Positions 1,050 to 46,753 of a stretch of 64,000 bases of DNA are shown one piece after another (position 1 is the first letter of the stretch; each line of letters begins with the position of its first letter). Source of the stretch: Mytilus edulis. Its lineage: Eukaryota. Where the stretch lies: NCBI RefSeq assembly GCF_963676685.1, contig NC_092344.1, positions 106,516,001 to 106,580,000 on the forward strand, written 5' to 3'. The notes beneath the pieces were generated by a model. It was not told where the DNA came from. It worked only from the letters and a program-made list of their open reading frames with translations, and searched no databases. The position numbers and the translations under genes are program-made.

Positions 1050-4000
1050 ACAAAATTATAATCCTGGTACCTTTGATAACTATAATGGGTTAAAAAACAG
1101 GGGTACGTCACTTTACTTCTATATTTTCCAGGAACTCTCCAGACCTAGCATTGTTATGAAAACAGTAACATGAGTGCATTATCTCATGGACATTCATCAA
1201 TTATCCATAGTTTTCTAATTTTGAGAAATGTCAAACGTTCTATCAAAAATATATTCCCTCTTATCCAAAAATGAATATTTTCACGTAAGTATTACATAAT
1301 TTTGATGACGTGCTTGTCTGGTAAACCAATTATTATCTTAAAAACCACAATTTACATTGTCGAATTTGCTTTATGTACACATTTGTTACTATTTATATTT
1401 TTCGTATGAGTTAAATTGTGGGATGCAGCCGGTTCTTTACCATATGTCTTGCCTCACTATACAAATGAATTACAATTCAAGATATATCCAATAAACATTA
1501 AAACAACTACTTCTGAAATCATATCTTTTAAAAGATTAGTTATTTGTCCTTTTACATTGAATGAAAAACTGTAGATAGAGACTGAACATTTAACACCAAT
1601 CTCTTAAAATATCAAGAATACAAAGCCACAGTTTTATCAAAGAGATAGCAACTACTGACGATGATTAAATATAAATTACTGAAGTCTCCATCAGAATATG
1701 TTAACACAATACCAATCGTGTAATATCCTAAACCCTACAAGTATTTCCCTATTCAGATTTTTTTTGAAAACATGTTAGTTTAAGTGTTCAGTGTTTCCAA
1801 GTAGAATGGCCGTATGGACAGTTCAAAAGACAAATCATGTGAAAGAACTAATCCAAGAACTATATATATTCTAAGGTAACAAGCAGTCTTCACAGCTCAG
1901 ACTTTCGGGCATGTAAAAATCATATCTACAGGTATACAAAATCTAAGTTAAATTTTGCAAATATTTACCTCCGGGTCTGTAGATCGAATATATTCTTAGT
2001 TCAAATCTATGTATTTGAAACTGTTTTGAAAATAAAACTCAGGAAACAGTAGTTAACCGATGTACACAATTCCTTTTGTATTTTAAAACCAAATAATTAC
2101 ATAACATGTATGTTACATTATAATACGTTATTTTAGATAACACCCATTTTTTCATGATCCTAGCAAGAAAAATTAAGTTATAATTATTGAATGATTTTTT
2201 TTAGTAACTTTATAGTGATTTTAAAACGTTGACCGTGCGCACATTTTAGAATGAAGCTCTTCTGTACTCCATACAAACTGTGTGTCGGACAACACTTTTG
2301 CAAACAAATAAAGGAGAAGGTCCGGTAAGGGCCGATTTAGGCCTCATATTTCATGTTCACGTGATGAAATATTTTAGACAATTTTTAAAGTGTCTACTTC
2401 AGTCGATTCAATTAGTTTATGGGAAAAATTTGAACTGATTTAGTCATTTCAGACGCTCAAATTCAAGCTTGAATAGGGGAAATTCTATCACATATGTCAA
2501 AATATGTCACTTTTACCGTATGATGGTTTTTGTCAAAAATGAAAGTGGCCGCATCCGTGTTCACTCTCAACCTTTTTATATATTATGTTTTATCATCAAA
2601 TACAACTTACAAATAAATATAAAGAATAAACACAAATTAGGTCACTTCCATTTTAAGACGTCTAAAATCTACCTCAAATGTTAAAATAGTGAAGATTTCA
2701 GTAATTTAACATGACTTAATGGTGCTAGTCCCCGATATATATGCACAGCCCATATTTATGTAACAAAAGTATTCTTCTTTCTAATAAATAGCTTAAAGTT
2801 AAAACGAGCTCCCACAATAAAATGCACAGGTTAATAAAATAAACTTGATTAAATCGTTTTTTCATTATCCTTGCTATAAAAATGAAGTTATAAGTATTGA
2901 ATGCTTTTTTCTTCGTAATTTTATAGTGTTGTTAACGCGTTGACCGTGTGCACATTTTAAGAATGAAGCTCTTCTGCGCTTCATACAAACTGTGTGTCGG
3001 TCAACGCTTTTATCAACAAAAAAATTTCCAAAAAGAAGCATTAAATTTCTCTATGAAAAGTAACTGCGGAAACCCATTCAACTTCACTGGTCCGGTTCGT
3101 TTTTAGGCTATGAATACATCTCCTCATACAAATCAAGATTCAGGCCAGATGTTCCGAAATAGACCAAAACAGAATCATTTACAGAAAAGCCGATTATTGT
3201 GGTAAAATCAAAATATCTTTCATGGCTCAATTATTATATTACCAAATGAGACTTGTTACCTTTGTCATAAACAAAACAACATCTGCTACTGAGGAGAGTT
3301 TGTCATTGCCATTTGATGATTCTTAACATCTCTCGTCATACATGCCATTTATTTTTCGGAAACAACTGATATATCATGGTTGTCATGTATAAACTTTCTG
3401 AAAAATGAAAATGTTTAAGAGATCAGTAGTAAATTATTCAAACAACCTAAAATGCTATGTAATTACTAGTAAAGCAAATTGTTTGATATCATAGTTGTTT
3501 TGTATTGCAACGCTATATAATTTTCAAGGTCGTATATGACATCAAAGACGTAAAATAAACAACTCGTTATCATATTTTGGTTTGACTTTGAGTTGTCCTT
3601 GAGACATAGTCCATTATGTGTGTCTTTCCTGTTCCTTGTGCTATGATGGATGGATGCGTAGTTTCACTGACAATCATAACAAATCTCAACATCAATTGTG
3701 CTTTATATAAAATTTAAGTGCGTGAGTATTTGTCAATTTTAATGAAAATAATTTCCTATAAAAACATATATTTACCACGCAAGACACAAATGAACAATGA
3801 CATTGAGACAGTTCTCCACAAGAGACCAAATCATTAATTTTACTTACCTATATTAGTCCAATGCCTGTGTTGAAAGAATTCTGGAAAATTGCTACAAGCA
3901 TTTTAAAAAATCATAACTGCTTAAACTTTAACAGGAAATATTATAAAAAAAACTTTCGTTAGTTTTGTTATTCATTCTGACCGTTTGTGTACTTTTATGG

Positions 4001-6229
4001 GTTTTATATACAAATATAGTCCTTTTTACGAGCGTCGCTGACAAGTCTTTTACGCATGCATACTGGAAACTTTATAAAACAAAATCAATGAAAGAGAAAA
4101 CAGAACACTCTTGATTCATCAACAGGATGGATAAAAACCAAACATTTGAAAGCAAGAAATGTAGAATGTACAAATGTTAGGTGATATACGATCAAAAAAG
4201 GCCATAAATGAATTGCAAACTTCAGGTATTATGTTGTGTTGTTACACTACTGTCCTAAATGTGCCAATTCCTCATCAGGAACCTGTAAATGAGAGATTGC
4301 CGTTTGTCGCTGTTTATGATATTTTGTTTCATTTGTTGTTTTGTACAGTTAACTCTGGCGTTGTGCTGTTATTACACTTTTCAAGGATGAAGGAGAGTTG
4401 GGCGTCTGCTTACATTTTCTCTTATTTAATCAACGGAATATATGAAATATATGACATATAGCATGCCACCGAAAAACAAATGACTGCTAAGCTGATTATT
4501 TCACAAGGGACTAAAAGTTGACCACAATAGAATTCGACCTTATGCTTAAAAGAAACTATCACTTTATAAATTTCGTGCATCCGAAACAATTTTCTTAAAT
4601 AATCTGTGTCAGAACTGCTCTTATCTAACTTTTTGCCTTTTTTTGCATTGAAAACCCGGAAGGTAAACATATGTACAAACATTAAAACTTATAGGACCAA
4701 AGGGACCTTAAAAGTGTTACCAAAATGTATCATGTAATTTTGAACCTCAGTTTCTATATAATTTTTAAATCTAACATTGGAAAAATTTAGAAATATGTGT
4801 ACTTAATGAAATCAGTCCTGACTACTGAGCTGACGATATCCTACATGATGACAGTCTATCCGTGTAGAAATCGACCCAATGTGTGTAAGAGAAAATAACA
4901 TTTTATAAATTTCTCATTTTCTCGATTTACCTGCCTACGTAAAGCCAAAACATAAACAATCGATGCACGGGATATAAATATTTGGAAGTATTTGTCACCG
5001 CTAAATGATAAAAATGGATTTGAAAATGGAAAATACTTCTAGATAAATTTAATTGCTTATTCAATCAATTTCAATCAAAAGTTTTAAAAAAACGAATATA
5101 TTCTTGGGTCGGGGTCCCTTTTTGGATCTTTACACCCAATCAAGGCAATTATTTACCCCGTCTTTATTTTAAAGAATCGTCACCTTTATAGATCGTAAAA
5201 TTTTTTAAACCAGATTTGTTGTCCACATGAAGATTCCAAGAATGAATTTACCACCAAAATTTTGGTCAGAAATATCAATGTATTGTATGTTCTAAAGATT
5301 GTGCGCGCAACCACCCATCCACATATCTAAGACTAAATTAATGCGATAAAAAGTTTTAATCCTATTTAATTGTGTTGGTTTTTTTTTAATTTGTGTAATA
5401 AGAATAGTTTGCTTTATATGCAGGTAATTTAACTATCATAGCTATATTTGACATTTTCTGTTTTCCTGTCAGGCATATTTCATTGTATTTTTCATCAGTG
5501 AAGATTCTTTTCGACATAATTAAACAGGTGATATTTTTCCCATAACATGTATCCTCAGGAAATGAGGCAAACAAGCTCAATCTGAGAATTGTTATAAGGT
5601 ATAAAACTTATACTATTTCGGCACGCCATTCTTTAATTATAAGCAAGTTCTTTCTTTTTATGAAATAAGCATGTTTCTTTATTGACGTTTGAAGAAACAA
5701 ATATGCCTACACATAGCCAAGAGGCATGGTAAACATTTAAAGTCTATAACACATGTGCTTGTAGTACAAAAAGACTGCAAGCAATATGTTACCGAAAATA
5801 TATGTCAATTAAACATTGAAGCAATTGTATTATACTTAATTAGTAAAGATATTGTCACTAATAGAATCGATATGTTTCATGAACTAGAGATGGAGGCAAC
5901 TGTTTTCCTCGATAAGTTAACAGATCCTTGCATTGAAATGTAATGCAAACTGTTTCGACTCACTGGAATTGAATTTAAGTAGTAGGTTACAGGGAGGGTG
6001 TTGAGTTTAAAAACAATACAATATTCCTCATGTGTCTGTCGGCTGGGTCGGGAACCTGTAAATTAGTGGTTATCTATAGTTTCTTTTTGTCATTTTCATT
6101 TTTATGTCTTTAATGATATGTTGCATAAGTCAGACAGTTAGTTTTTACTAGGAATTCGTTCTGATTGGTCATGGCAGGCCCGTTTATATACAACTTCCTG
6201 GCATTGGTCATGTTTGAACTATAATTGTT

Positions 6230-14402: not shown

Positions 14403-16835
14403 ATGCGTTTTTTATGAAATAAATTAACGCACAGTTAAAATAAAAGTAAACAGCAACATCGCGTCTTCTTATTCTGTTTGTAAACCCTTCATGATTTATA
14501 ACAAACCTTTCTTAAATTGTTCGTTAATAAATTTTGAAATTATTAGACACTAACGTTTAAACTTCCTCAGGCAAAGTTGACTTCAGATGCATTTGCTTAT
14601 TTTTTGTATCCTCTGGGTTAAATAGCTCTTCAGCTGTTTATGTACTCCAACATCCTTTGCTTTAAAATAGTCGGTCATGCGTGTTCCTGATAAAGGTAAA
14701 TCAAGAAAAGAGCTTTTGACCCAAGAAATGTATAACGTAAACAAAAATGATACAAAAAGGACATAAGGTTTTTAATTATTGGCAACTGTCAGGACCATAT
14801 AACAAGTTATAAGTCTCTTTGACAAATTGAATGCTGCGAATTTTGTAAGATAGTTAAATCATTGTTTTTAAAATGTAAAAACACACACAGATATAAAATA
14901 ACAACATCAAAGGACAAGAGCAGCTAGAAGAGAGAAAATAGTAGTACAATATAGATATTTGTCACTGGATGTTGAACAGAGATTAATATGTCGATATAAA
15001 ATGCGGATGGTGCGAAGAAACGAATTGCAGAGTGTTGAAGGTTATGATACAGAAATTGGACTACTATACCTACGTTTCCATGTAAAAGAAAATAGATGAG
15101 ATTATGCGAAATTATATGTCAATATTTTTTTTTATATATTATTCTTATTACAAAAAATTGAAGATTATAGACGATAAAAATAACACTTTTTAATATAATT
15201 TTGTCAGTCCGAAAAACTGTTCTGGATTTAATCCCATCTGGAACACTCCTAATCTTAATAAAAAATTGAAATCCAAGGAGGTCTAAGACATGAAAACGAG
15301 AGACGTATGTGACAAAAAGGGCCAAATTTATCTAAGGTCAGCTTCGCCTTATGGAGTTAAAATATCTTGCTCGTCCTCTAATGGTGGTTATTTTCTCTTG
15401 GTCTGACTGATTGTGTCAGGATAACTTTATATCTGTAAATTTGTCATCATGTGCTATATAAGTCCATTGCGTGAACCATTCTCATAGATCATGGTTAACT
15501 TAACCAGTTTCCAGAGAGTAATTACATTGAATGCACAAGTGTAAACCAACAGCGATAAATAAAGTAATCAATTTGTAAATTACCTCATTGGTAAATCAAA
15601 GGAGGAGCTAAATGGAATTGAATTCAAGTGAACATAATGAGATTTAAGACTCTGGAATGATGTATGTGATTGAAGGCAAGGTCGAAGATCTATATTGTAC
15701 TTTCTATTACATTAGTGAGTTGTTGTCCTACAATGAACACTTTATCACTCTTTCTCATGATCTTTGGTCATCAATCACAAACCACTATTATATAATGTCC
15801 TAGTGTTTTGCGCATTCCGCATAATCACCAAGGTTTCAGTTGTCAGTGGTATTTACATATTGCCTTAATTTGTTAAGATGCATTATGTATTTCATGAAAA
15901 TTATGGCCATTAAAAGCCAACATCAATTTGAAATTAACTGTTCGAACTATGTAATATTTTCATAGTTTCGTACTTGTTTGGATAGACTTCATATCACAGC
16001 TACTACTTACAAAACATAAAATGACAAAATAACTGAACTCGAAGTTTTTAAACGTTTGACTATATCAACCAACGAAACGACTTGCAAACAACCGTTATTA
16101 AGAGAAAAAACAATTAATACGATTTCTTTATATTTTTCTCTTTAAGGTCATTTGTATTATTCGAGTGTCAACTTTTTTCTTTATCCTGGTATCTATGATG
16201 TGTTTGTATGATACTATACTTTATAAAAACGTCATGACGAGGTTCCTCTAATGTAGTAATGTTCAAGCTCTCCAATGTTAAAGTAAACCAAAGATCTGCT
16301 ATGTAAGTTCCAAAGCGTTTACATTCGCTTGAATTTCTTTTCACCTGGAAACAAAATTCCTTTTTAATATTGATATTGATTATTATGAGATACTAGTAAG
16401 TAAATTATAACACATGAGATTCTTTGTCAGTTTCTGGTTGTTTCTGTTTCATACTATATTTAAAATATTTAAAAGAAGTAAATTGATTGTCCATATTTAG
16501 CCAAACTATTTTGGATATTTGGTTGAGGTTACGATTGCCCTTCTTTACTCATTTGGTTGTAGATGTATATTATCACTTGTTATAATCGAAGTTCAAATGC
16601 TGTATTGACAAAAAATGATTAAAGAGTGTAATTTTTAACGTAATTCTTATACAAATGTAAAACCAAAAAAAAATAGACTGCCGATAACATTTGTTTTACA
16701 CTTTTTTCACGTAAATCAACTGTGCAGTCTTGTTTAAAATCAAACACCAATTAAAGAATTTTTAGTAATCTATATATATTTCTATACACAAGAACATTTA
16801 TTATAGTGATCTTTATATATATATATATATATATA

Positions 16836-17015
16836 TATAAGTACGTCTGAGTCAGTGACAACCCTACAACAGATGTATCCATCGGATCGCCATCAATGAT
16901 GGTGATACATGGCTGTGTACATAATGTATATACAACTCGTCATGTATCACCATCATTGATGGCGATCCGATGGATACATCTGTTGTAGGGTTGTCACTGA
17001 CTCAGACGTACTTAT
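16836..17015. repeat. Fold-back (inverted) pair of partial copies of the 441-bp unit after (TA)n
   Basis: 16838-16941 is the reverse complement of unit sequence (gacgagttg...gacgtactta); 16942-17015 is a direct copy; this gives ~75-bp hairpin arms. Confidence 0.9.
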
Positions 17016-17029
17016 ACATATCGTATATA

Positions 17030-18147
17030 TAGCATTCCATACAGCCAAGCTCTTAGAATAAGGCGAATCTGCTCCTCTGAAGACACTGCAAAACAACGTC
17101 TGGGGCAGCTTAAAGGACATTTGATAAGAAGGGGATATAAACACAAAAACATCAAAAATAGTTTTCGAAAAGCGGAATCCATCCCCAGAAGCAGTCTGCT
17201 AACTTACAAAGATAAACAGAAAAGTAAAAGAATCCCATGTGTGCTCACCTACCATCCATGCCTGAGAAATAGTTTCAAGACCATTCGTGATCATTGGACA
17301 GCAATCGAAAAACACTCGAAGTTATCCAAAATCTTTCCTGAGCCTCCCATGATTGCCTTCAAACAACCTAATAGCCTGAGAAATATACTTGTCCGTGCTG
17401 ACCTTTCCAAACCTAACCATACTGTAGGTAATTGTCAGCCTTGTGGGGATAAGCGCTGCAAATGTTGCAACCAATTGCAGCATTCATCAACATTTCACAG
17501 TAAGACCACAGAAAAGACATACAAGATCTTCTGCAATGTCAACTGCAAAAGCTCAAACGTGATTTACGTTCTTGAGTGTCCTAGATGTGGTCTCCAATAT
17601 GTTGGTGAATCTATGCAGCCATTTCACAAACGCCTCAATGGCCACAGGAGTGACCCCACAAAAAACCCGTATATTCCTGTCAGCCAACATTTCAGGTTAC
17701 CAGATCACAATCTGAAAGATTTTGATCACATGAAGATCCTTGTGATCGAACAGGATTGTACATAGCAAAATAGGCAAAGAGAAAATCGGGAGAGGTTTTG
17801 GATAAAAACACTGGGTGTCTTCCATCCAGATGGAATCAATAGAAAGAAATAATTAAATTTACAGTCTAGTGTTTATATTATTATCTTCAGGATTTTGGAT
17901 TAAAATCAATCGACCAAAACTTACCTGTATTATTAGTGATCTATGTTTACACCTTATACATTATATCTTATTATTGTTAAAACTTTTGTCACCGAAGAAG
18001 GCCATTTGTTGAGCCGAAATATTTGCAATTATTGTATAATTTATATCATCTGTTCAGTTTTTCCATCTTTGTGCAATGATATTCAACACTTTTTAGTGTT
18101 TTGTTTTCCATCTATTTATCGGTATTGTTACACAATCTTTCAGACTC
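17030..18147 (+). mobile_element. 5'-truncated Penelope-like retroelement (Neptune-type: RT thumb - Cys linker - GIY-YIG)
   Basis: The frame from ~17031 reads SIPYSQALRIRRICS...RRGY...VLTYHP...CQPCGDKRCKCC...NVIYVLECPRCGLQYVGES...RLNGHR...VSQHF. After an in-frame TAG at 17763 it continues RERFWIKTL..HPDGIN*. It is flanked by (TA)n. Confidence 0.9.
17031..17852 (+). pseudogene. Penelope-like RT C-terminus/GIY-YIG endonuclease ORF fragment with one premature stop
   Basis: Track ORF 17121-17765 extends upstream without an ATG and downstream past TAG (probably TGG>TAG) to TAA at ~17852. Confidence 0.85.
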
Positions 18148-18165
18148 ATATATATATATATATAT

Positions 18166-19514
18166 GTTGATGTTTAGACGAGTTGTATATACATTATGTA
18201 CACAGCCATGTATCACTATCATTGATGGCGATCCGATGGATACATCTGTTGTAGGGTTGTCACAGACTCAGACGTACTTATGAATATAATTATTTTCTGT
18301 GACTGTATCTTACATTAATTTGTAGGATCCTTTACTATAGATAATTTAGCTGATCTGTAACAATAACATCTTCATGCCTTATATATCATGTACTGTAGTA
18401 CGCCGCTAGATTTAAACTGACGTGGAAAGGTAACACATGCCCACCGAAAGCTCTTTTTTTGAGAGCCCAGGTGGTCGTGTGGTCTAGCGGGACGGCTGCA
18501 GTGCAGGCGATTTGGTGTCACGATATCACAGTAGCATGGGTTCGAATCCCGGCGAGGGAAGAACCAAAAATTTGCGAAAGCAAATTTACAGATCTAACAT
18601 TGTTGGGTTGATGTTTAGACGAGTTGTATATACATTATGTACACAGCCATGTATCACTATCATTGATGGCGATCCGATGGATACATCTGTTGAAGGGTTG
18701 TCACTGACTCAGACGTACTTATGAATATAATTATTTTCTGTGACTGTATCTTACATTAATTTGTAGGATCCTTTACTATAGATAATTTAGCTGATCTGTA
18801 ACAATAACATCTTCATGCCTTATATATCATGTACTGTAGTACGCCGCTAGATTAAAACTGACGTGGAAAGGTAACACATGCCCACCGAAAGCTCTTTTTT
18901 TGAGAGCCCAGGTGGTCGTGTGGTCTAGCGGGACGGCTGCAGTGCAGGCGATTTGGTGTCACGATATCACAGTAGCATGGGTTCGAATCCCGGCGAGGGA
19001 AGAACCAAAAATTTGCGAAAGCAAATTTACAGATCTAACATTGTTGGGTTGATGTTTAGACGAGTTGTATATACATTATGTACACAGCCATGTATCACTA
19101 TCATTGATGGCGATCCGATGGATACATCTGTTGTAGGGTTGTCACTGACTCAGACGTACTTATGAATATAATTATTTTCTGTGACTGTATCTTACATTAA
19201 TTTGTAGGATCCTTTACTATAGATAATTTAGCTGATCTGTAACAATAACATCTTCATGCCTTATATATCATGTACTGTAGTACGCCGCTAGATTAAAACT
19301 GACGTGGAAAGGTAACACATGCCCACCGAAAGCTCTTTTTTTGAGAGCCCAGGTGGTCGTGTGGTCTAGCGGGACGGCTGCAGTGCAGGCGATTTGGTGT
19401 CACGATATCACAGTAGCATGGGTTCGAATCCCGGCGAGGGAAGAACCAAAAATTTGCGAAAGCAAATTTACAGATCTAACATTGTTGGGTTGATGTTTAG
19501 ACGAGTTGTATATA
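18166..19514 (+). repeat. Tandem array of three 441-bp units plus ~25 bp, each with tRNA-type Pol III A/B boxes, flanked by (TA)n
   Basis: Units start at 18166, 18607, 19048 and 19489 (partial), with about 3 substitutions in total. In unit 1 the A box TGGTCGTGTGG is at 18472-18482, the B box GGTTCGAATCC at 18539-18549 and T7 at 18454-18460. Confidence 0.92.
18461..18901 (+). ncRNA. Putative ~440-nt structured Pol III transcript (tRNA-derived head), repeated at +441
   Basis: Internal A/B boxes, next T7 at 18895-18901, complementary 5' and 3' ends, perfect AAATTTGC-GAAA-GCAAATTT hairpin. Confidence 0.5.
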
Positions 19515-20724
19515 TATATATATATACGACTAAGATTGAACAATGCAAATTTAATTTCAGTATTAAAAACAGTTTTGAAAGTCATAAATTTTAATTTTAA
19601 ATAATAGAATTTAATTCAATAATAATTAAATTCAGTTATTGTAATTATATAACTTTGTATGCCTATTATTGATTTAAATTGACGGTGTGTTCGATTCATT
19701 TTATACTGGTCACTTTAATATGCTAATTAGTTTAGCCCGCGAAATGTTAGTCCGTGCAATTTACCTCGTGTGGTTTGGTCATTTGAGTTCAAACCTTACA
19801 CGGAGCTTGACCAAAGCTATAGAATTTAAAACACAGAAGAAAAGATGAGTATTCTTTTTTAGCTTTAGAATTAAGCAACATTTTATAAAAAATAATAGCT
19901 CAACAATTTAAACTGTTAATCTGGTTTTTCTTTCTTAAATAATTTTAACTTTGTTAAATGCTTTAAATAGTCGTGAACTTTTTCTTTGGTGTTATAACTG
20001 AATTTAAATTCTATCATTGCGTAAATTGTCAATCTTTTCTTGGATATTATTTTATATTTATATTTGTAAATTGAGTAGATGGTTATACTTATTGTGCGAG
20101 TTGTTATATCTAATTGTTTAACTGTCTTAATACGCTAATGAACATTTACCATGTTATTTATTCTTAATCCAAATCCAAATCTTGCAGCGCGAAGTAACCG
20201 GTGAGTAAGCCACATATTAATTTCAACATAAATGTATATATAAATTCTTTTTAGTCTAAATATGCATGAAATAGGTGCCACTGGACATAAAGAAAACAAT
20301 CTATGAATCTAGGTATGGCAACGAATGCTATTCACATTCAATGCATTCTGAATGAGATTGGTTTACAGATTTCACTGTATAAATATTGTAACTGATATAC
20401 AGATATGAATTTACTTTACTTTTATACATACAAGTATTTTAATACAGTGATCTGACATAATTACTTGTTTGAAATGTCTGGAATAAGAATAATGTTATAT
20501 TATTTTCATTGTTTTTCAGTGCAACAGGTATTTTAGTCCAGTAGAATAATTGTTAAAAGGTTGTTGTTTATCTTTATTTATAAGCATTCACTATACATGC
20601 TATATAAGAATAAGAATATTTCATTAAATGTTAATGAAAAGGGAACATTCTAAAACTATCATGACAATACAAAGACAGATGACATATTTCAAAACTTTTC
20701 TTGTCTCTCATGGTACAACTGATT

Positions 20725-22084: not shown

Positions 22085-23306
22085 ATGCCGAGAGGAAAAG
22101 GGGAGAGGGTGCTGCCAAACCGTGCTGTAAGTAGGCAAAATCAAATACAGCTACCGGTAAACAGAAGGCTTCGCCCAAAGAGAGCTGAAATTGTAAGACA
22201 AAATATAGCCATTCCACAACAGCCGTTAATACCACCACAACAGCCGTTAATACCACCACAACAGCCGTTAATACCACCACAACAGCCATTAATACCACCA
22301 CAACAGCCATTAATGCCACAACAACAGCCAGTAATGCCACCACATCAGTTATTGCCACCACATCAGTTATAACCACAACAGCCATTTGTACCACTACAGC
22401 CAATTCTACAACCACAACTCATTTGAACCTCAAACTTCCTCAGCAGCCCGCTGAACAACAAGTTCCTGATCAGGGATGTGTACACCCAGGGCAGCCCACA
22501 GCTTGTAATTCTGTACAAAACGGTGAGATTTTAGTTATACCTACTAATACTGATGTTGATGTGTTTGTACCACAAAAAATTATAAACCAAATATGGAATT
22601 TAGAATATGTTGATTTGGCACAATTACTTTACAAAAAAAAAAAAAAATTTTGTTTCAAATATTGATCAACCGAAAAAAGTGCTCGGTTTTGATGAAGATG
22701 GAGACATTTTAATTGACAGAAACAAATATTCAAAAGTAAATCATTATCTAACTTAGGTGAGTGGACTGAAGGGTTTTTAAATTATATGAAAATTTTATTG
22801 CAAAGATTCCCGGAATTGGCAAATGAATTGATTAGCTACATGACGATTATAAGGGGGTGTACCTTTTGAGAACGTTTATAAATTTGACATGCAATTTCGA
22901 CTTAGAGAAGCTCGTGATCATATGCGTGCATTGGACGTCATTGATGGGCAGCTATGGCTTCCGTTTATTGCAGTAGGCATAAATCATGTTCCACAGACAT
23001 CTTCTTATACTTCTCACACAGTTATTAGTCCTTGCTACGATTATAATTTTAAGGCCGTTTGTACTCGTATGAATTGTGTATACAGCCATGAATTCATGTA
23101 TAAGATGTAGCCAGTTCCATCCTTCGATGTGCTGTACAAATTATTCATATAACAAGAATAATCCTCGAAGTTCTGTAACTTCGGACTATTCTGCTCCTAG
23201 GTATCAAAACTACCCTAGGGCACCTGATGCAAACAATTTTGCACCAAGGTATCAGTCCAGTGCTAGAGCAGTCAAACAGGTTTTTGAATACACATGGAAA
23301 TTTTAA
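22085..23306 (+). pseudogene. Frameshifted gag-like ORF of the YR retroelement
   Basis: Four consecutive short track ORFs (22085, 22423, 22889, 23076); DIRS-gag-like W..EYVDL..LL motif and Cys/His cluster. Confidence 0.6.
22213..22375 (+). repeat. 21-bp tandem repeat encoding (PPQQPLI)n inside gag
   Basis: ccacaacagccgttaatacca repeated ~7 times. Confidence 0.9.
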
Positions 23307-41400: not shown

Positions 41401-44400
41401 GTTTTCTGCATTGTATTTTAACTCATTTTCTTGTATTTTATTTTTCATAGTCAGCTTTGATCCTACTGGTACAGTTGATTCCAGTTATTTACACAGCCTA
41501 TTTGTCAGACAAAATTATGCAATAAAGCGGAGTATGCTTATATCTGAAATGCCAAATAAGGGAGTCAAACAGAACTGTTCAGTAAAGGAAATCTCTGAAG
41601 AAATATGAAGGTCTTTAATCAATTTACAACAAATTGAATGTTGATTTATTCTAATAAAAGTTAAATGACTAGTGTCATACATGTTTTTTTTTATTTTGTA
41701 TTCTGTCAATAAACATGATAAAGATTATAAACACATTTTGTTTTAGTTTATTTGTGTAATTTTTTTATACTGAGGTTTCCTTTACCTGGGATATGAAAAA
41801 ACTCAAATTGTTTTGAAAATAGATTTGTTTCCATGACGTCACCTGTATGTACAATGTACATCTACATTGTTACGCTTTGATTAAAATAAACTGTTTAACA
41901 ATACTACACAGTTTATAATCATTTTAACAATAGATGTGTAATGAACTGCCTTTGATATGCAGTATTTATAGCTTGCTCAGTGAAGTAACACCATTTATTA
42001 AACCTCGTTAGTTTTGTATATGAAAAGCAGTAATGGGGCCATGTACAGGTAATTTGCTAGACATGAGTGTTGAAAGTGAGAAAATATAATAATAAGAAGT
42101 GAATGCTCTTTTCATAAAATATTATATACAAATGATTAGTTCATTTCCATTTTCCAACGGTTATAGGAATAGATTTAATGTACCTTCATTTGTCACACTA
42201 TCAGAGTATCAGACTAGTCCAAATAATTTTGACGTCTTGGAAGGCTATTTTAAATTTTTGCTTTGATGCTTCTAAGAAAAAAATGTAATGGAAGTACACC
42301 ACTAATTAATGGCCCCATTGCTTTCTATGTTAAATTCCTCAATTTCGAGTGGTCACAGCTCTTTTATCTTAAGTTCAAATAAAGTGACAATCAGTGCATG
42401 TCAAAGCAACACCTTCTGGTGTCCTGTACTGAAAAAATCAACATACCTTACATGGCATATAAGAAAGAACTGGTTCCCGGAACTTCGGATGTACCAAAAC
42501 AGGTACTTCCGATCTGACAAAAAGGCAAAATGTACCCTCCTTTTTAAATTTCATGCCATTTTTTTATTATTCAAATTTATCAGTCAAAAATTGTTCTACA
42601 ATGAAGCTTTCATTTGATACCAAAATTAATAAAATATTCTAAATATTTTGAAAGTTATGTCCATGCGTAGGAACTATTTTGTGTTAAATATGTACTACTT
42701 TCTGGTATGTGCTTTCTGGCCGGGCCCGAATTAGTGGTGTTACACCTAATAGCCTTTCAAGATGTTATAATTATTTGGACTAGGTACATGAGACTAATGC
42801 ACCTTATTGCTATTCCAGGCTGACCCAGAATCTTTCCCACTTGAACTTCTGACGTCATACAACAATCACTTTGGCGTCAGATATTTTGTATCATGATGTC
42901 AAAATTTTACTGGAACCTGTGTGATGTCCAGTAATGGCGGACAAATAGCGATCAGTGTATACTGCCTTCTCCTCATTCCGGTGTATCCCTGATTCCGGTG
43001 TAATGTTAAATTGCGGGTATTTGTTGAACTAAAAGCGCGTGCAAGGGTCAGGGGTTACAGGTTACAGACAACTGGTGCATCGCTGTCATCAAGAAATGTA
43101 AATACGTCAAACAGTCTTCATTACAGGTAAATATATATATATTAGCGCACGATAGTATGATTTCCATAATTCCCAAATTCATGCATATGCCATAAAATAT
43201 CAAGCCATCTAAAAATATTGAATAATCATCCCAAATCGATTTATTGTTATTGATTTCTCGTCTGCCATTTGCAAGGCGTCCCAAACAACAGTCACGTGAT
43301 GATACAGCCTCGATATGACTCTGAAAAATCTATGGAAAGCCTGATTAACAAAAATGAACACTTTTACAGTTTATTTTAGAAAAAAGTTATTAATCTCGTT
43401 TTTATGTTTATGAAACTATTTATGTTGATTGAATTTAATAAAAATTAATAAATATGAATATGAAGAACATATTACTGTGATTAAAGGACAAAATGCTTGC
43501 ACAATAATTATTAAAAGAAATGTGCTTTATAATTAATTGAAGGTATAAAGGGGGGGGGGGGGGATGAAAATATTTTTTTCAAACTGAATTTAAGATTTTA
43601 CTGATCTTTTGTAAATGTTTATGTCTATTCATTTTTATTACAGATATTTTTACAATGAAGAAAAAGCAGTATGATCCAAATGCGTTAAAATTTGCCTATG
43701 ATGCTGTACAAAATGGAATGTCTGTTTACAAAGCTGCAAAAAACTATGGTATTCCAGAAAGCACGCTTAGAGATAGGACACTTGGTTTGGTTTCTGTGGA
43801 TGGGAGATGCTCCAATTACCTTTTTGATGAGTCTACAGAGAAAAAAATGGTGGACCACATTGCACATATGGCCAGCATTGGTTATGGTTATTCAAGAATA
43901 GATGTCATTTATCTAGCAACTGATTTAGCTGTGTTTATGGGCAAGAGAAAACCTCAAGAGGATATATTGAGCAACAAATGGTATTACTCTTTTATGAAAA
44001 GATGGCCAAATCTAACTATTAGTAAACCACAGAAATTATCCATGCAGAGAGCTAGATGTGCATCAAAGGAGACACTATCTAACTATTACAAAGAGTTGGG
44101 CACTATTATGACCAAAAACAATCTGCATGAACAGCCACACAAAATATTTAATATGGATGAGAGTGCTCTACAAACTGAACATAGCCCAGGTAAAATTGTT
44201 CATGACATTGTTGTTAAGCCCCAGTCTGTCACATCGCCAAGATCTGCAAATGTCACTATAATTGGTGCTGGCAATGCAATTGGAAATGCTGTTCCACCTT
44301 ATTATGTATTTCCGGGTGTTAAATTTGACAGGGCTCTACTTCTTGATGGGACTCCACCTGGTTCTGATGGCCAATGCAGTAAATCTGGATGGTCTAACAG

Positions 44401-46753
44401 TGAAATATTCAAAATGTACCTGGAAAAGCATTTTCTCAAGTATGTATCACATGATGTCTCTGGCACTCCTCTTCTTATATTGTTTGATGGCCACCGCTCA
44501 CATGTGAGCTTAACTTTGCAAGATTGGGCTGAATCAAAGAACATCATTCTTTTCATACTTCCACCACACTGTAGCCACATTTTACAGCCATTAGATATAG
44601 GGTGTTTTGGACCATTAAAGGCTTGTTACAACCGGGAGGCACAGTTGTTTATGAGAAAAAATCCAGGATGTAAAATTACAAGGTATAACATAGGACAAAT
44701 GTCTTGTTCTCCCTACCAGAAAGGTCTATCTGCACAGAACTTGATATCATCTTTTAGGAAAAGTGGGATATATCCTTTTAACCCAAAAGCTGTTGACACC
44801 AGCGAACTTGCTCCAGCTACAATTTACCCCACAGCTACATCAGATGAAGCAAGTACAATGAATAATACACAAATTTCACAAGAAGATGACAACACTTCCT
44901 CTCAGCAATTCAACAAAGCTGCCACTCTGACGATACAACAATTTGAAGCTTCATCATCAGCCCAAAAGGAACAAGATATCTCATCAGATCAAGATGAATC
45001 AAATAGTCAACCGTTGCTTACTCTAGTTCCTCCTGAAAGCAGGTACTCTGATGACATTCAAATATATACCGCAGAACCAATAATTGAATTGAACACATCA
45101 AACAACTCTTCGAATATAACCACATGTACAGTAAACAGTTCTCCATCCGGATTCCTGCTAAAAAGAAATGTTGTTTCAGTTGAAAAGACAGAAAAGAAAA
45201 GGAAACACTTCACAATCACAGGAAATTTAGGAAAAAAGAAAAATATGGATCATCTGAATCAGTCAAAAAAGAAAGGAACTTTTAAACCACCCTATAAAAA
45301 AGCAGAGCCTAAGACAGTTGAAAAGGAAACTAGAAATCAAAACAAAGCAGGAAAAGATACCAAAAAGAAGGCACCTGTAAAAAGAAAAAGTTCAACTGTG
45401 ATGGAAAAAATTGAAAAAAAAATTAGATTATCAGAGGATGATGTTAATGCAGGTCTTGGTACATCTGGTTTAAACAAGGATAAAGGAGGACCAATATGTC
45501 TTGAGAATTCATTTAGTGACAGTGATGAAACCGATGATGACGACGGTGAAACTTGCTGTGTTTGTAATAAGAAATCTCCCTCAGAGATCAGACAACTAGC
45601 AGGAATTGTGTTTGTCAAATGGGCACAATGTGACAATGATAACTGCCGTCACTGGACACATCTCCAATTCTGTAGTGATGTTAGAGTCTTGCGGAGAGGG
45701 GATACTTTCTTTTGTCCACACTGTAAAGAACAGTAAACTGTCCAATATACAGAACACTATTCCAAAAACTGTTATTCTGATTTAAAAAAAAACAACAAAC
45801 AATAGATTTAAAAGAACTGTTTAATATTAATGTAATTTTTCTATTTATTCAGTTAAAGTAGATTTTCAAAAAGTGAAACTTTGTGAAATATTTTTTTCCC
45901 ACTATTGACATCAAAATAGAATTATTAAAATAATTTCCACAAAAGAGTGAAAGTAAAACAAAAATTTGAATGAGAATTTTTTTTTTTTATATAAATTTAG
46001 AAAAAAAATCTTGCATATATTGGACTTTTCAACATTTTTCATCTTGTCAAAAATAATTTGTGTATTTGTCCTAAATAAAATCGTGTTTTGCTGATCTGTA
46101 CTTCTTACTAGAATATTAGCGTTATTTGATGCACAAAATAAGGTGCATTAGTGTTCCAAGTTGTCCTCCATACTATATTTTACCTTTGCACCGGAAAGAG
46201 GTTAATAGCAAAAACAATGATGGGTGGTGATCACCGATTTTCAATCATTTATTAAACTGATAAAACTTGACAAATGGGTAACATATTATGCATCATTGAA
46301 GAGCTAAATAACTGAATTTTATTTATTTCAATCATATTTGTTCCGTTTAGTTCGAAAAATGCGTTTGGAATAATGATTAACATTTTGACCACCGGAATGG
46401 GGTTAACCCAGTATATAGGGTGTCGGAGCTAAGGGGTGACAGACCAATTGGGCGTCAGACTAGTAGAGTTACCATGTTGGCGTATCAGGTCGACCCAAAA
46501 AAAATCATCACACCTTATATCTGGGGGGTTTTCAGGTACATGTTTAAATGAAAACGCTTCAAAAACATACTTTACAAGTTGAAAGATCAACTTTTAAAAT
46601 CTGTCCTGCAAATGCACCATCTTTTTCAACCTCAGGAGCAACCATGTAAAAGTTTCCATCCTTATCAAACACTGGACCTTCCGACCCTAATAATTTGTCA
46701 GCAATCTTTGTAAATTCGTGTTGTGAAATTTTAGGGGCACCTGTGTCGGCCAT
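38230..46753 (-). CDS. Diisopropyl-fluorophosphatase (squid DFPase)-like / SMP-30-gluconolactonase family beta-propeller hydrolase, 5 coding exons, 311 aa
   Basis: Exons 46753-46571, 40629-40489, 40289-40158, 39191-38975 and 38492-38230 all have GT-AG boundaries and splice in frame (936 nt). The product (GSEGPVFDKDGNFYMVAPEVE...GGIPAGCQCD...MQGCNDCSFDYDGNLWVTAPAGE...FSNGIAV...GGPDGMDFD...HWGSSHLEVFGPDGG...CPFSKPSNVHF...VTEHE...QYC) is colinear with Loligo DFPase as I recall it. Confidence 0.93.
38975..39191 (-). CDS. DFPase-like exon 4 (ERFGSVYC...WGKLP)
   Basis: AG/GT bounded, 217 nt; FSNGIAV motif. Confidence 0.9.
39102..39315 (-). repeat. 113-bp-period tandem duplication of the DFPase exon 4 acceptor and first ~90 nt
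   Basis: 39215-39315 duplicates 39102-39202 with 2 substitutions. Confidence 0.92.
40158..40289 (-). CDS. DFPase-like exon 3 (FCTTDKDG...KRSTE)
   Basis: AG/GT bounded, 132 nt; MQGCNDC motif. Confidence 0.9.
40489..40629 (-). CDS. DFPase-like exon 2 (ATVICEP...SGQFKQ)
   Basis: AG/GT bounded, 141 nt, phase 0; GGIPAGCQCD and ADMRLG motifs. Confidence 0.9.
42214..42783. mobile_element. MITE with ~35-bp TIRs
   Basis: CTAGTCCAAATAATTTTGACGTCTTGGAAGGCTATT versus the reverse complement CTAGTCCAAATAATTATAACATCTTGAAAGGCTATT; a related terminus occurs at ~58965. Confidence 0.85.
42798..42959. mobile_element. Small MITE abutting the pogo left end
   Basis: TGCACCTTATTGCTATT versus the reverse complement TACACTGATCGCTATT; a second copy at 47511-47951 is interrupted. 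Confidence 0.6.
42960..46413 (+). mobile_element. pogo/Fot-like (DD35D) DNA transposon, apparently full length
   Basis: Imperfect 24-bp TIRs (TACTGccttctcctCATTCCGGTG at 42960 versus the reverse complement of caccggaatggggttaacccagta ending 46413); TA on both flanks; extra subterminal TTCCGGTG/CACCGGAA motifs near 42993 and 46189. Confidence 0.85.
43655..45736 (+). CDS. pogo-family transposase: HTH_psq + CENP-B-type HTH + DDE_1 (DD35D) + C-terminal PHD finger
   Basis: Uninterrupted 693-aa ORF: SVYKAAKNYGIPESTLRDR (psq HTH); NMDES, LFDGHRSH and LQPLD catalytic aspartates with 35 residues between D2 and D3; C-terminal CCVC...CDNDNCRHWTHLQFC...CPHC (C4HC3). Confidence 0.92.
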   Translation: MKKKQYDPNALKFAYDAVQNGMSVYKAAKNYGIPESTLRDRTLGLVSVDGRCSNYLFDESTEKKMVDHIAHMASIGYGYSRIDVIYLATDLAVFMGKRKPQEDILSNKWYYSFMKRWPNLTISKPQKLSMQRARCASKETLSNYYKELGTIMTKNNLHEQPHKIFNMDESALQTEHSPGKIVHDIVVKPQSVTSPRSANVTIIGAGNAIGNAVPPYYVFPGVKFDRALLLDGTPPGSDGQCSKSGWSNSEIFKMYLEKHFLKYVSHDVSGTPLLILFDGHRSHVSLTLQDWAESKNIILFILPPHCSHILQPLDIGCFGPLKACYNREAQLFMRKNPGCKITRYNIGQMSCSPYQKGLSAQNLISSFRKSGIYPFNPKAVDTSELAPATIYPTATSDEASTMNNTQISQEDDNTSSQQFNKAATLTIQQFEASSSAQKEQDISSDQDESNSQPLLTLVPPESRYSDDIQIYTAEPIIELNTSNNSSNITTCTVNSSPSGFLLKRNVVSVEKTEKKRKHFTITGNLGKKKNMDHLNQSKKKGTFKPPYKKAEPKTVEKETRNQNKAGKDTKKKAPVKRKSSTVMEKIEKKIRLSEDDVNAGLGTSGLNKDKGGPICLENSFSDSDETDDDDGETCCVCNKKSPSEIRQLAGIVFVKWAQCDNDNCRHWTHLQFCSDVRVLRRGDTFFCPHCKEQ
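46571..46753 (-). CDS. DFPase-like exon 1 (MADTGAPK...VDLSTCK)
   Basis: ATG at 46753; GT donor at 46570-46569; contains the EGPVFD motif. Confidence 0.9.

Follow-up and report, generated by a model that had tools for sequence, protein, structure and literature searches.

To our knowledge, Penelope-like elements (PLEs) are the least understood class of retrotransposons, and hammerhead retrozymes are the only non-autonomous riders that have been proposed for them. A preference for (TA)n targets and the occurrence of tandem and inverted layouts have been described for the Neptune and Naiad PLEs, the former with a C-terminal and the latter with an N-terminal endonuclease (PMC8557442). Metazoan non-LTR retrozymes are hammerhead tandem repeats linked to PLEs, with mussel examples of 350-390 bp that contain a type I hammerhead (PMC7229834), and they are thought to use the PLE machinery (PMC7229834; bioRxiv 10.64898/2026.07.22.740005). 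The tRNA SINEs of bivalves, for which tandem and palindromic arrangements are reported, have LINEs (Nimb, CR1-Zenon, and others) as their published partners, and PLEs are absent from that paper (PMC11481361). A full-text search of the literature returned these PLE-linked retrozymes and LINE-linked bivalve SINEs, and no tRNA-headed, hammerhead-free rider of PLEs.

Here, we analyzed a 64,000-nt stretch of Mytilus edulis DNA (the window) in which a tandem array of a 441-bp unit lies next to a PLE. We consider it probable, at somewhat better than even confidence, that this array is a single insertion of a young, high-copy, non-coding retroposon with a tRNA-derived head, likely mobilized by a PLE.

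An array within a composite (TA)n insertion site

TRF delimits the array at 18166-19514, with a period of 441, 3.1 copies (3.06 units), and 99% matches, which bears out the tandem 441-bp units claimed by a previous sequence-only reading of the locus. As located by sequence and blastn on the plus strand, the three units occupy 18166-18606, 18607-19047, and 19048-19488 and are followed by 25 nt (19489-19513), and the array as a whole (18166-19513) ends in the unit's TATATA, its major 3' end. That reading also placed (TA)n on either side, as we found: a (TA)n at 18149-18165 separates the array from the 3' end of the PLE, and a (TA)9 at 19509-19526 forms the right flank, fused with the TATATA within which the array stops. 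Two 3'-end signals are recognized in the plus-strand unit, namely a major one, TTTAGACGAGTTGTATATA (unit 8-26; 18614-18632), defined by 3'-junction counts and insertion loci, and a minor one, CAGACGTACTTAT (unit ~104-116; 18269-18281), at which junction counts place the insertion end at several hundred loci.

Upstream of the array and in the same orientation, a 5'-truncated PLE (17031-18148, plus strand), 98.8% identical to full-length copies in the genome, retains the tail of its open reading frame with the GIY-YIG domain (17121-17765, plus strand; domain search), and its 3' untranslated region ends in ..TTTCAGACTCA immediately before the (TA)n. Further upstream, a (TA)13 (16814-16839; TRF) marks the left edge of the composite insertion site. 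An inverted fragment of the unit (16830-16941, minus strand; unit ~123 to 12) has its 3' end, an AGAC..TTAT site, set against this (TA)13, and it meets a direct fragment (16941-17021, plus strand; unit 42-122) head to head, both fragments being defined by blastn and sequence. This inverted/direct arrangement is a fold-back pair such as twin priming produces. One microsatellite within the window thus holds the PLE, the fold-back pair, and the array.

Elsewhere in the window, TRF reported a 21-bp tandem repeat at 22214-22348 (6.4 copies, 94%) and an 18-bp repeat at 22372-22433 (3.4 copies), which have the motif CCACAACAGCCAT in common and may be coding repeats. An intact open reading frame of 693 aa at 43655-45736 (plus strand), with HTH_psq and DDE_1 domains, encodes a pogo/Tigger-type DNA transposase.

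Copies of the unit, their ends, and the adjacent PLE family

Genome-wide counts were made on a 1.37-Gb assembly with at least 14 chromosome-size contigs. The unit is found on many chromosomes, in thousands of insertions and in arrays of up to at least 15 units, and the array of the window is therefore not a chance occurrence. Exact 25-mers returned 1955 major 3' junctions of the form ..AGACGAGTTGTA(TA)n and 2832 internal unit-unit junctions, and a B-box 28-mer, searched with up to three mismatches, returned 8199 sites. Our insertion sample comprised 80 loci with the major 3' junction, taken in genomic order, 71 of which were resolved. The median length of these 71 insertions is 265 nt, with 52 shorter than one unit, 14 between one and two units, and 5 longer, and their 5' ends fall throughout the unit, whereas the 3' end is constant. 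Nearly all insertions lie in (TA)n, most of them with (TA)n on both flanks, and at 17 of the 80 loci an inverted copy abuts the 5' end, its own 3' end turned outward against (TA)n. Taken together, the fixed 3' end, the scattered 5' ends, the (TA)n flanks, and the inverted copies are the hallmarks of target-primed reverse transcription with 5' truncation and two-nick priming. The junction statistics, along with a 3' motif common to the unit and the PLE (see below), uphold the sequence-only reading in its description of a non-autonomous (TA)n retroelement with Penelope-type copy shapes, whose multimers are permuted and primed at internal TA sites.

Spread at the DNA level, in which satellite or eccDNA pieces or Helitron cargo would be re-inserted at fragile (TA)n by microhomology, would account for the (TA)n on both flanks and for the TA microhomology present at many 5' junctions. 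The strong asymmetry between one fixed and one scattered end led us to reject satellite expansion, eccDNA capture, and Helitron transposition. The termini of Helitrons (5'-TC and CTRR-3', a subterminal hairpin, and A-T insertion) were not found in the unit, which begins with GTTGATG.. or a variable sequence, its 5' ends being scattered, and ends with ..GTTGTATATA. Since the choice of the 3' end also follows AGAC and not the length of TA, and since the RNA is strand-specific with the same polarity as the insertions (both discussed below), we regard spread at the DNA level as extremely improbable.

The counts of insertion ends indicate what fixes the 3' end. The sequence AGACGAGTTG-TATATA (unit 11-26) is used 1955 times and CAGACGTACTTAT several hundred times (809 raw matches, some of them double-counted), whereas TATATAT (unit 216-222), which is the longest TA run of the unit and is not preceded by AGAC, is used twice. 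The unit consensus contains two AGAC motifs only, both at the used 3'-end sites. Because the used ends are the only AGAC sites and the longest TA run is almost unused, it would be a short upstream signal, and not TA, that decides the end. We infer that AGAC has this role and that TA microhomology is needed but not deciding. Among the other distinct (TA)n flanks in the sampled loci, AGAC was present in 16 of 296, compared with a background of 3.0% (p=0.017), a modest excess.

The PLE family next to the array combines an RVT_1 domain with a GIY-YIG domain at the C terminus, has a Cys-rich linker (CxxC..CxCC) ahead of the latter, and includes intact open reading frames of up to 914 aa. It is a young family (99% identity) with many inverted pairs, and the ~4000 candidates for its C-terminal part, compared with ~1000 for its upstream part, indicate 5' truncation. 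Its copies have two alternative 3' ends, both of the form YAGAC-N2-3-(TA)n, either ..TTTCAGACTCA|(TA)n (as CAGACTCA|(TA)n) or, 85 nt further, ..ATAGACTC|(TA)n. The 85-nt extension is present in about half of the PLE copies (L133-L138, L141, and L142) and resembles the "tail" described for PLEs (PMC8557442).

The PLE and the unit both target (TA)n and frequently occupy one microsatellite, both use alternative ends within their sequence, and both terminate in YAGAC-N2-6-(TA), and arrays of the unit lie within 100-430 bp of 2 of the 11 other PLE loci. In blastn comparisons of the unit with the 3' 2.5 kb of 12 PLE loci, only inserted copies of the unit were found, and no similarity past the short 3' motif. 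A derivation of the unit as a pseudo-LTR or deletion derivative of this part of the PLE was accordingly rejected, there being no identity to PLE sequence over the 3' 2.5 kb of these 12 loci, though a PLE 5' end may contain a unit-like piece. Judged from sequence and location, the 914-aa PLE family would be the likeliest candidate for the unit's enzyme, and the circumstantial case for it is strong.

Since this link between the PLE and the unit is circumstantial, the alternative to be considered is a (TA)n-tailed LINE. The unit would then be an ordinary tRNA SINE, mobilized by a LINE whose tail is of the (TA)n type, and its arrays would have formed later by unequal crossing-over. The 5' inversions fit this alternative too, as LINE twin priming also yields them. 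Bivalve tRNA SINEs with microsatellite tails, tandem and palindromic forms, and LINE partners provide a precedent (PMC11481361). Against it, many arrays of 1.1-3 units combine the canonical 3' end with a random 5' end, and both the 3' motif and the dual ends match those of the PLE. A LINE-type 3' tail was not found in the sampled loci, where the common 3' feature, YAGAC..(TA)n, is shared with the PLE only. We consider mobilization by a LINE very unlikely, and we retain a PLE as the probable partner of the retroposon.

The tRNA-like head, the hairpin, and the RNA

The unit contains a promoter piece of tRNA origin (18472-18549, plus strand), that is, an internal Pol III-type promoter with A and B boxes whose cloverleaf has been lost. 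The B box at 18539-18549 (GGTTCGAATCC) is perfect (11/11), and this box and the T7 run at 18454-18460 are both present as the sequence-only reading had stated. The A box that it placed at 18472-18482 is indeed an A-box-like 11-mer, but the overlapping 11-mer at 18480-18490 (TGGTCTAGCGG) is a better fit to a tRNA D-loop; that there are two such overlapping 11-mers is due to an 8-nt internal duplication in the unit. Like the previous reading, we obtained no tRNA fold, with no cloverleaf by ARAGORN (thresholds of at least 80%) and no Rfam tRNA match at E<=10, and removal of the 8-nt duplication gave a marginal ARAGORN cloverleaf at 80%. The head may resemble tRNA-Glu, but we assign it to no parent tRNA.

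The favored 5' end of full-length copies at the insertion loci, 18461-18464 (plus strand; unit 296-299), is where one would expect Pol III to initiate or a tRNA-like 5' end to lie. Of the 71 insertions, eight have their 5' end at unit 295-299 (p=1.5e-6) and the others are 5'-truncated, and the RNA reads that carry mixed sequence upstream end at 18462-18464. This position is thus where some templates start, and Pol III initiation is plausible for part of them. Copies of ~170 nt that extend from this start to the first end signal (L050, L063, L093, and others) resemble a classical SINE. A second peak of 5' truncation, at unit 365-380 (18530-18545), contains 12 of the 71 insertions (p=9e-6) and falls just before and inside the B box/T-arm; an m1A58-type stop of the reverse transcriptase was rejected as its explanation, since the 5' ends lie beyond the would-be A58 (unit 380).

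A few 5' junctions are unusual. The full-length copies at L062 and L080 have (GA)n upstream, fused with the element's GAGAGCCC start, which points to slippage, or to the addition of untemplated nucleotides, at this junction. At L064, a copy truncated from unit 321 has A20 and GAAGCT upstream, an odd junction for a (TA)n-targeting element.

The RNA-seq data comprised three stranded runs under one species label (~8 M records each) and a fourth run, X24, of a different library type, in which unit RNA is scarce and the reads are mostly 90-95% alike. Each stranded run yielded 3800-5900 reads of unit RNA with a 20-60-fold strand bias. First mates are 20-60 times commoner on the minus strand; for libraries of the usual dUTP type, as assumed here, the RNA is plus-strand, and its polarity matches that demanded by the insertions. 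Across the unit, T7 included, coverage is roughly even, the depth at the T7 junction being ~950 compared with 1090-1105 in the adjoining bins and the one change in length being a 1-nt T deletion in 12% of the reads. In the three stranded runs, no pile-ups of read beginnings or ends were found at T7 or at the head. This read-through without ends is at odds with a unit-length RNA that begins behind one T7 and terminates at the next.

Such an RNA was the core of the sequence-only reading, in which one T7 precedes the Pol III start and the following T7 ends transcription, and the paired ends of the resulting 441-nt RNA allow circularization or template jumping and hence multimers. The A and B boxes, the 5'-end peak at unit 295-299, the loose RNA ends with mixed flanks before 18462-18464, and the significant hairpin described below all speak for it, and the scarcity of the RNA in X24, given its other library type, could mean that the RNA is non-polyadenylated. 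The role of T7 as a terminator is not supported, however: the RNA reads are colinear through T7 and the head at nearly full depth, and the copies themselves also speak against it. Several subfamilies lack a run of four or more T at this position and have TATTATTG or a similar sequence instead, and the insertion at L037 starts at unit 299 yet contains a whole further unit, including the downstream T7. It follows that T7 is not a conserved terminator that sets the unit. In addition, some arrays combine, in register, units that belong to different subfamilies (17-32 differences). This too weighs against the model, which we regard as unlikely.

Two populations can be distinguished in the RNA. In the weak opposite-strand channel and in the fourth run, the depth climbs gradually from 18458 to 18633 and then drops sharply, a gradient that mirrors the genomic 5' truncation and is what passive transcription of dispersed copies would give. 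At 18632, 46-81 reads per run (~4-6% of those at the 3' site) exit into (TA)n flanks, compared with ~41% of genomic junctions that are terminal, and all of these reads could come from the passive background. Since flank exit is this rare, the dominant RNA is almost wholly continuous from unit to unit, and either a few long, strongly expressed arrays or a circular RNA must be invoked as its source, both being putative. Variants specific to one run, at 18317 in X22 and at 18658/9 in X23, account for 11-16% of the reads and favor a few dominant source loci.

The depth over 18282-18425 is 1.5-1.9 times that of the rest of the unit in each of the stranded runs and falls off abruptly near 18426, and a few short inserts end at 18427-18429. 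This excess may correspond to a stable fragment or to a structure-related bias.

The possibility of circular RNA is best considered as an analog of the retrozymes in which host enzymes, and not a ribozyme, would make a unit-length circle that is then copied by rolling-circle reverse transcription. Flat coverage with no ends anywhere and a dominant RNA that hardly exits to the flanks are what such a circle would give, mussel hammerhead retrozymes accumulate as circRNA (PMC7229834), and units differ at 0.5-7 positions within an array compared with 12.4 between arrays. Short reads across a tandem junction, however, look the same for a circle and for a multimeric transcript, no cleavage motif was found, and the tRNA-like part shows no intron-like skip. 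Moreover, rolling-circle copying of a monomeric circle cannot explain the arrays of mixed subfamilies, whereas such arrays are accounted for if the reverse transcriptase switches templates or copies heterogeneous multimeric RNA. We judge this route improbable.

The sequence-only reading had noted the absence of a canonical hammerhead, and our searches agree: the array had no Rfam ribozyme match at E<=10, and four PLE loci had no match to hammerhead, twister, or other ribozymes at E<=1. Permissive Rfam searches of the array and of these four loci returned chance or palindrome matches only, and a motif scan for the CUGANGA core found it neither on either strand of the unit nor in six PLE loci.

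The complementarity reported around T7 corresponds to a long, imperfect, 128-nt hairpin at 18385-18512 (plus strand), centered on T7, with a minimum free energy of -56.9 compared with -36.1 +/- 4.0 for shuffled sequences (z -5.1). The whole unit, taken in the T7 phase, folds end to end (z -2.7), and the GAAA-tetraloop hairpin at 18568-18587 and the 9-nt GATCTGTAA/TTACAGATC pair of the previous reading are likewise present. The left arm of the long hairpin is complementary to the head, A-box region included, and the hairpin is centered 1-4 nt before the favored 5' end. The end pairing proposed by the sequence-only reading is thus significant as complementarity, but a degenerate inverted copy of the unit's own head accounts for it better than a device for circularization does; that copy would be the fossil of a head-to-head insertion that is now part of the propagating unit. 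We favor this interpretation because present-day insertions often show an inverted copy that meets the 5' end of a direct copy, as at 16830-17021 in the window and at L005, L042, L047, and L072. Its basis is the folding energy together with the abundance of head-to-head insertions in the genome today; a strict local alignment between the arms gave short blocks only.

Subfamily variants of the apical stem are paired (GCTCT/AGAGC, GCTCTA/TAGAGC, GCTTCAT/ATGAAGC, and, with wobble, GCTTTA/TGAAGC) and represent one or two events, a pattern that may point to selection acting on the RNA or to a junction formed anew. In a covariation check of 66 hairpin copies, the RNAalifold term was -0.19 and one pair was changed on both sides, a negligible signal with few changes. 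A variant without the apex of the hairpin and the first part of the head (18420-18476) was seen as an RNA joint skipping 55 nt (7-9 reads in two runs), and a similar form lacking the hairpin apex exists as genomic copies (L068/L069).

A possible route of propagation and its relation to known elements

Our current working model for the putatively PLE-mobilized retroposon is the following. The core would be a ~170-nt tRNA-derived SINE with an A/B-box head, a short body, and the tail ..AGACGAGTTG-TATATA, to which the 441-bp form would add ~270 nt, made up of the degenerate inverted head, which forms the hairpin around T7, and the second AGAC..TA end signal. Sense-strand RNA, abundant and mostly continuous from unit to unit, would serve as the template. 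A (TA)n-specific PLE enzyme with reverse transcriptase and GIY-YIG activities, most likely from the adjacent 914-aa family, would nick a (TA)n microsatellite, and the resulting TA 3'-OH would anneal to UAUA after AGAC anywhere in the RNA. cDNA synthesis would then proceed toward the RNA 5' end over a variable distance, giving products from 50 nt to several in-register units, and because (TA)n is self-complementary, the second nick could prime as well and produce the head-to-head inverted pairs.

A bolder version of this proposal, which we put forward tentatively and consider unlikely to be right in full, would have the abundant sense RNA run on from unit to unit without a poly(A) tail, possibly as a circle, and arise without any self-cleaving ribozyme. 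Host enzymes would instead be recruited by the tRNA-like module, which would make the unit a ribozyme-free counterpart of the retrozymes. It would also be the first partner of a PLE to be of the SINE type, with AGAC-(TA) as the template signal of the reverse transcriptase.

If the unit does ride on a PLE, a ribozyme is not required for tandem retroposition of the PLE type, and AGAC followed by UA repeats becomes a short candidate template signal. Priming by both strands of the palindromic (TA)n would explain the inverted and tandem layouts of PLEs, and the unit family would be a natural substrate for the missing assay of PLE retrotransposition. As a sizeable and strongly expressed repeat, the family also deserves a name in mussel genome annotation.

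Compared with the (TA)n-targeting PLEs (PMC8557442), the unit shows the same target, strong 5' truncation, partial tandems, adjacent inverted 5'-truncated copies, and an alternative tail extension at the 3' end; unlike them, it codes for nothing, and it is not a deletion derivative of PLE sequence over the 3' 2.5 kb compared. With the SINE2-type elements of bivalves it shares an A/B-box head, a short non-coding body, a microsatellite-type tail, and 5' ends at the predicted Pol III start, but here a 441-bp composite propagates and inserts as in-register multimers, and the RNA reads through the T-run. Like the non-LTR retrozymes, it consists of non-coding head-to-tail units of a few hundred base pairs that are dispersed, highly expressed, and found near PLEs. 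It differs from them in that it contains neither a hammerhead core on either strand nor an Rfam ribozyme and carries a tRNA-derived A/B-box head, in that its likeness to the PLE terminus is limited to a short 3' motif, and in that a circular form of its RNA is putative. The unit would thus work like a SINE with a PLE in place of the LINE and, equally, like a retrozyme without the ribozyme.
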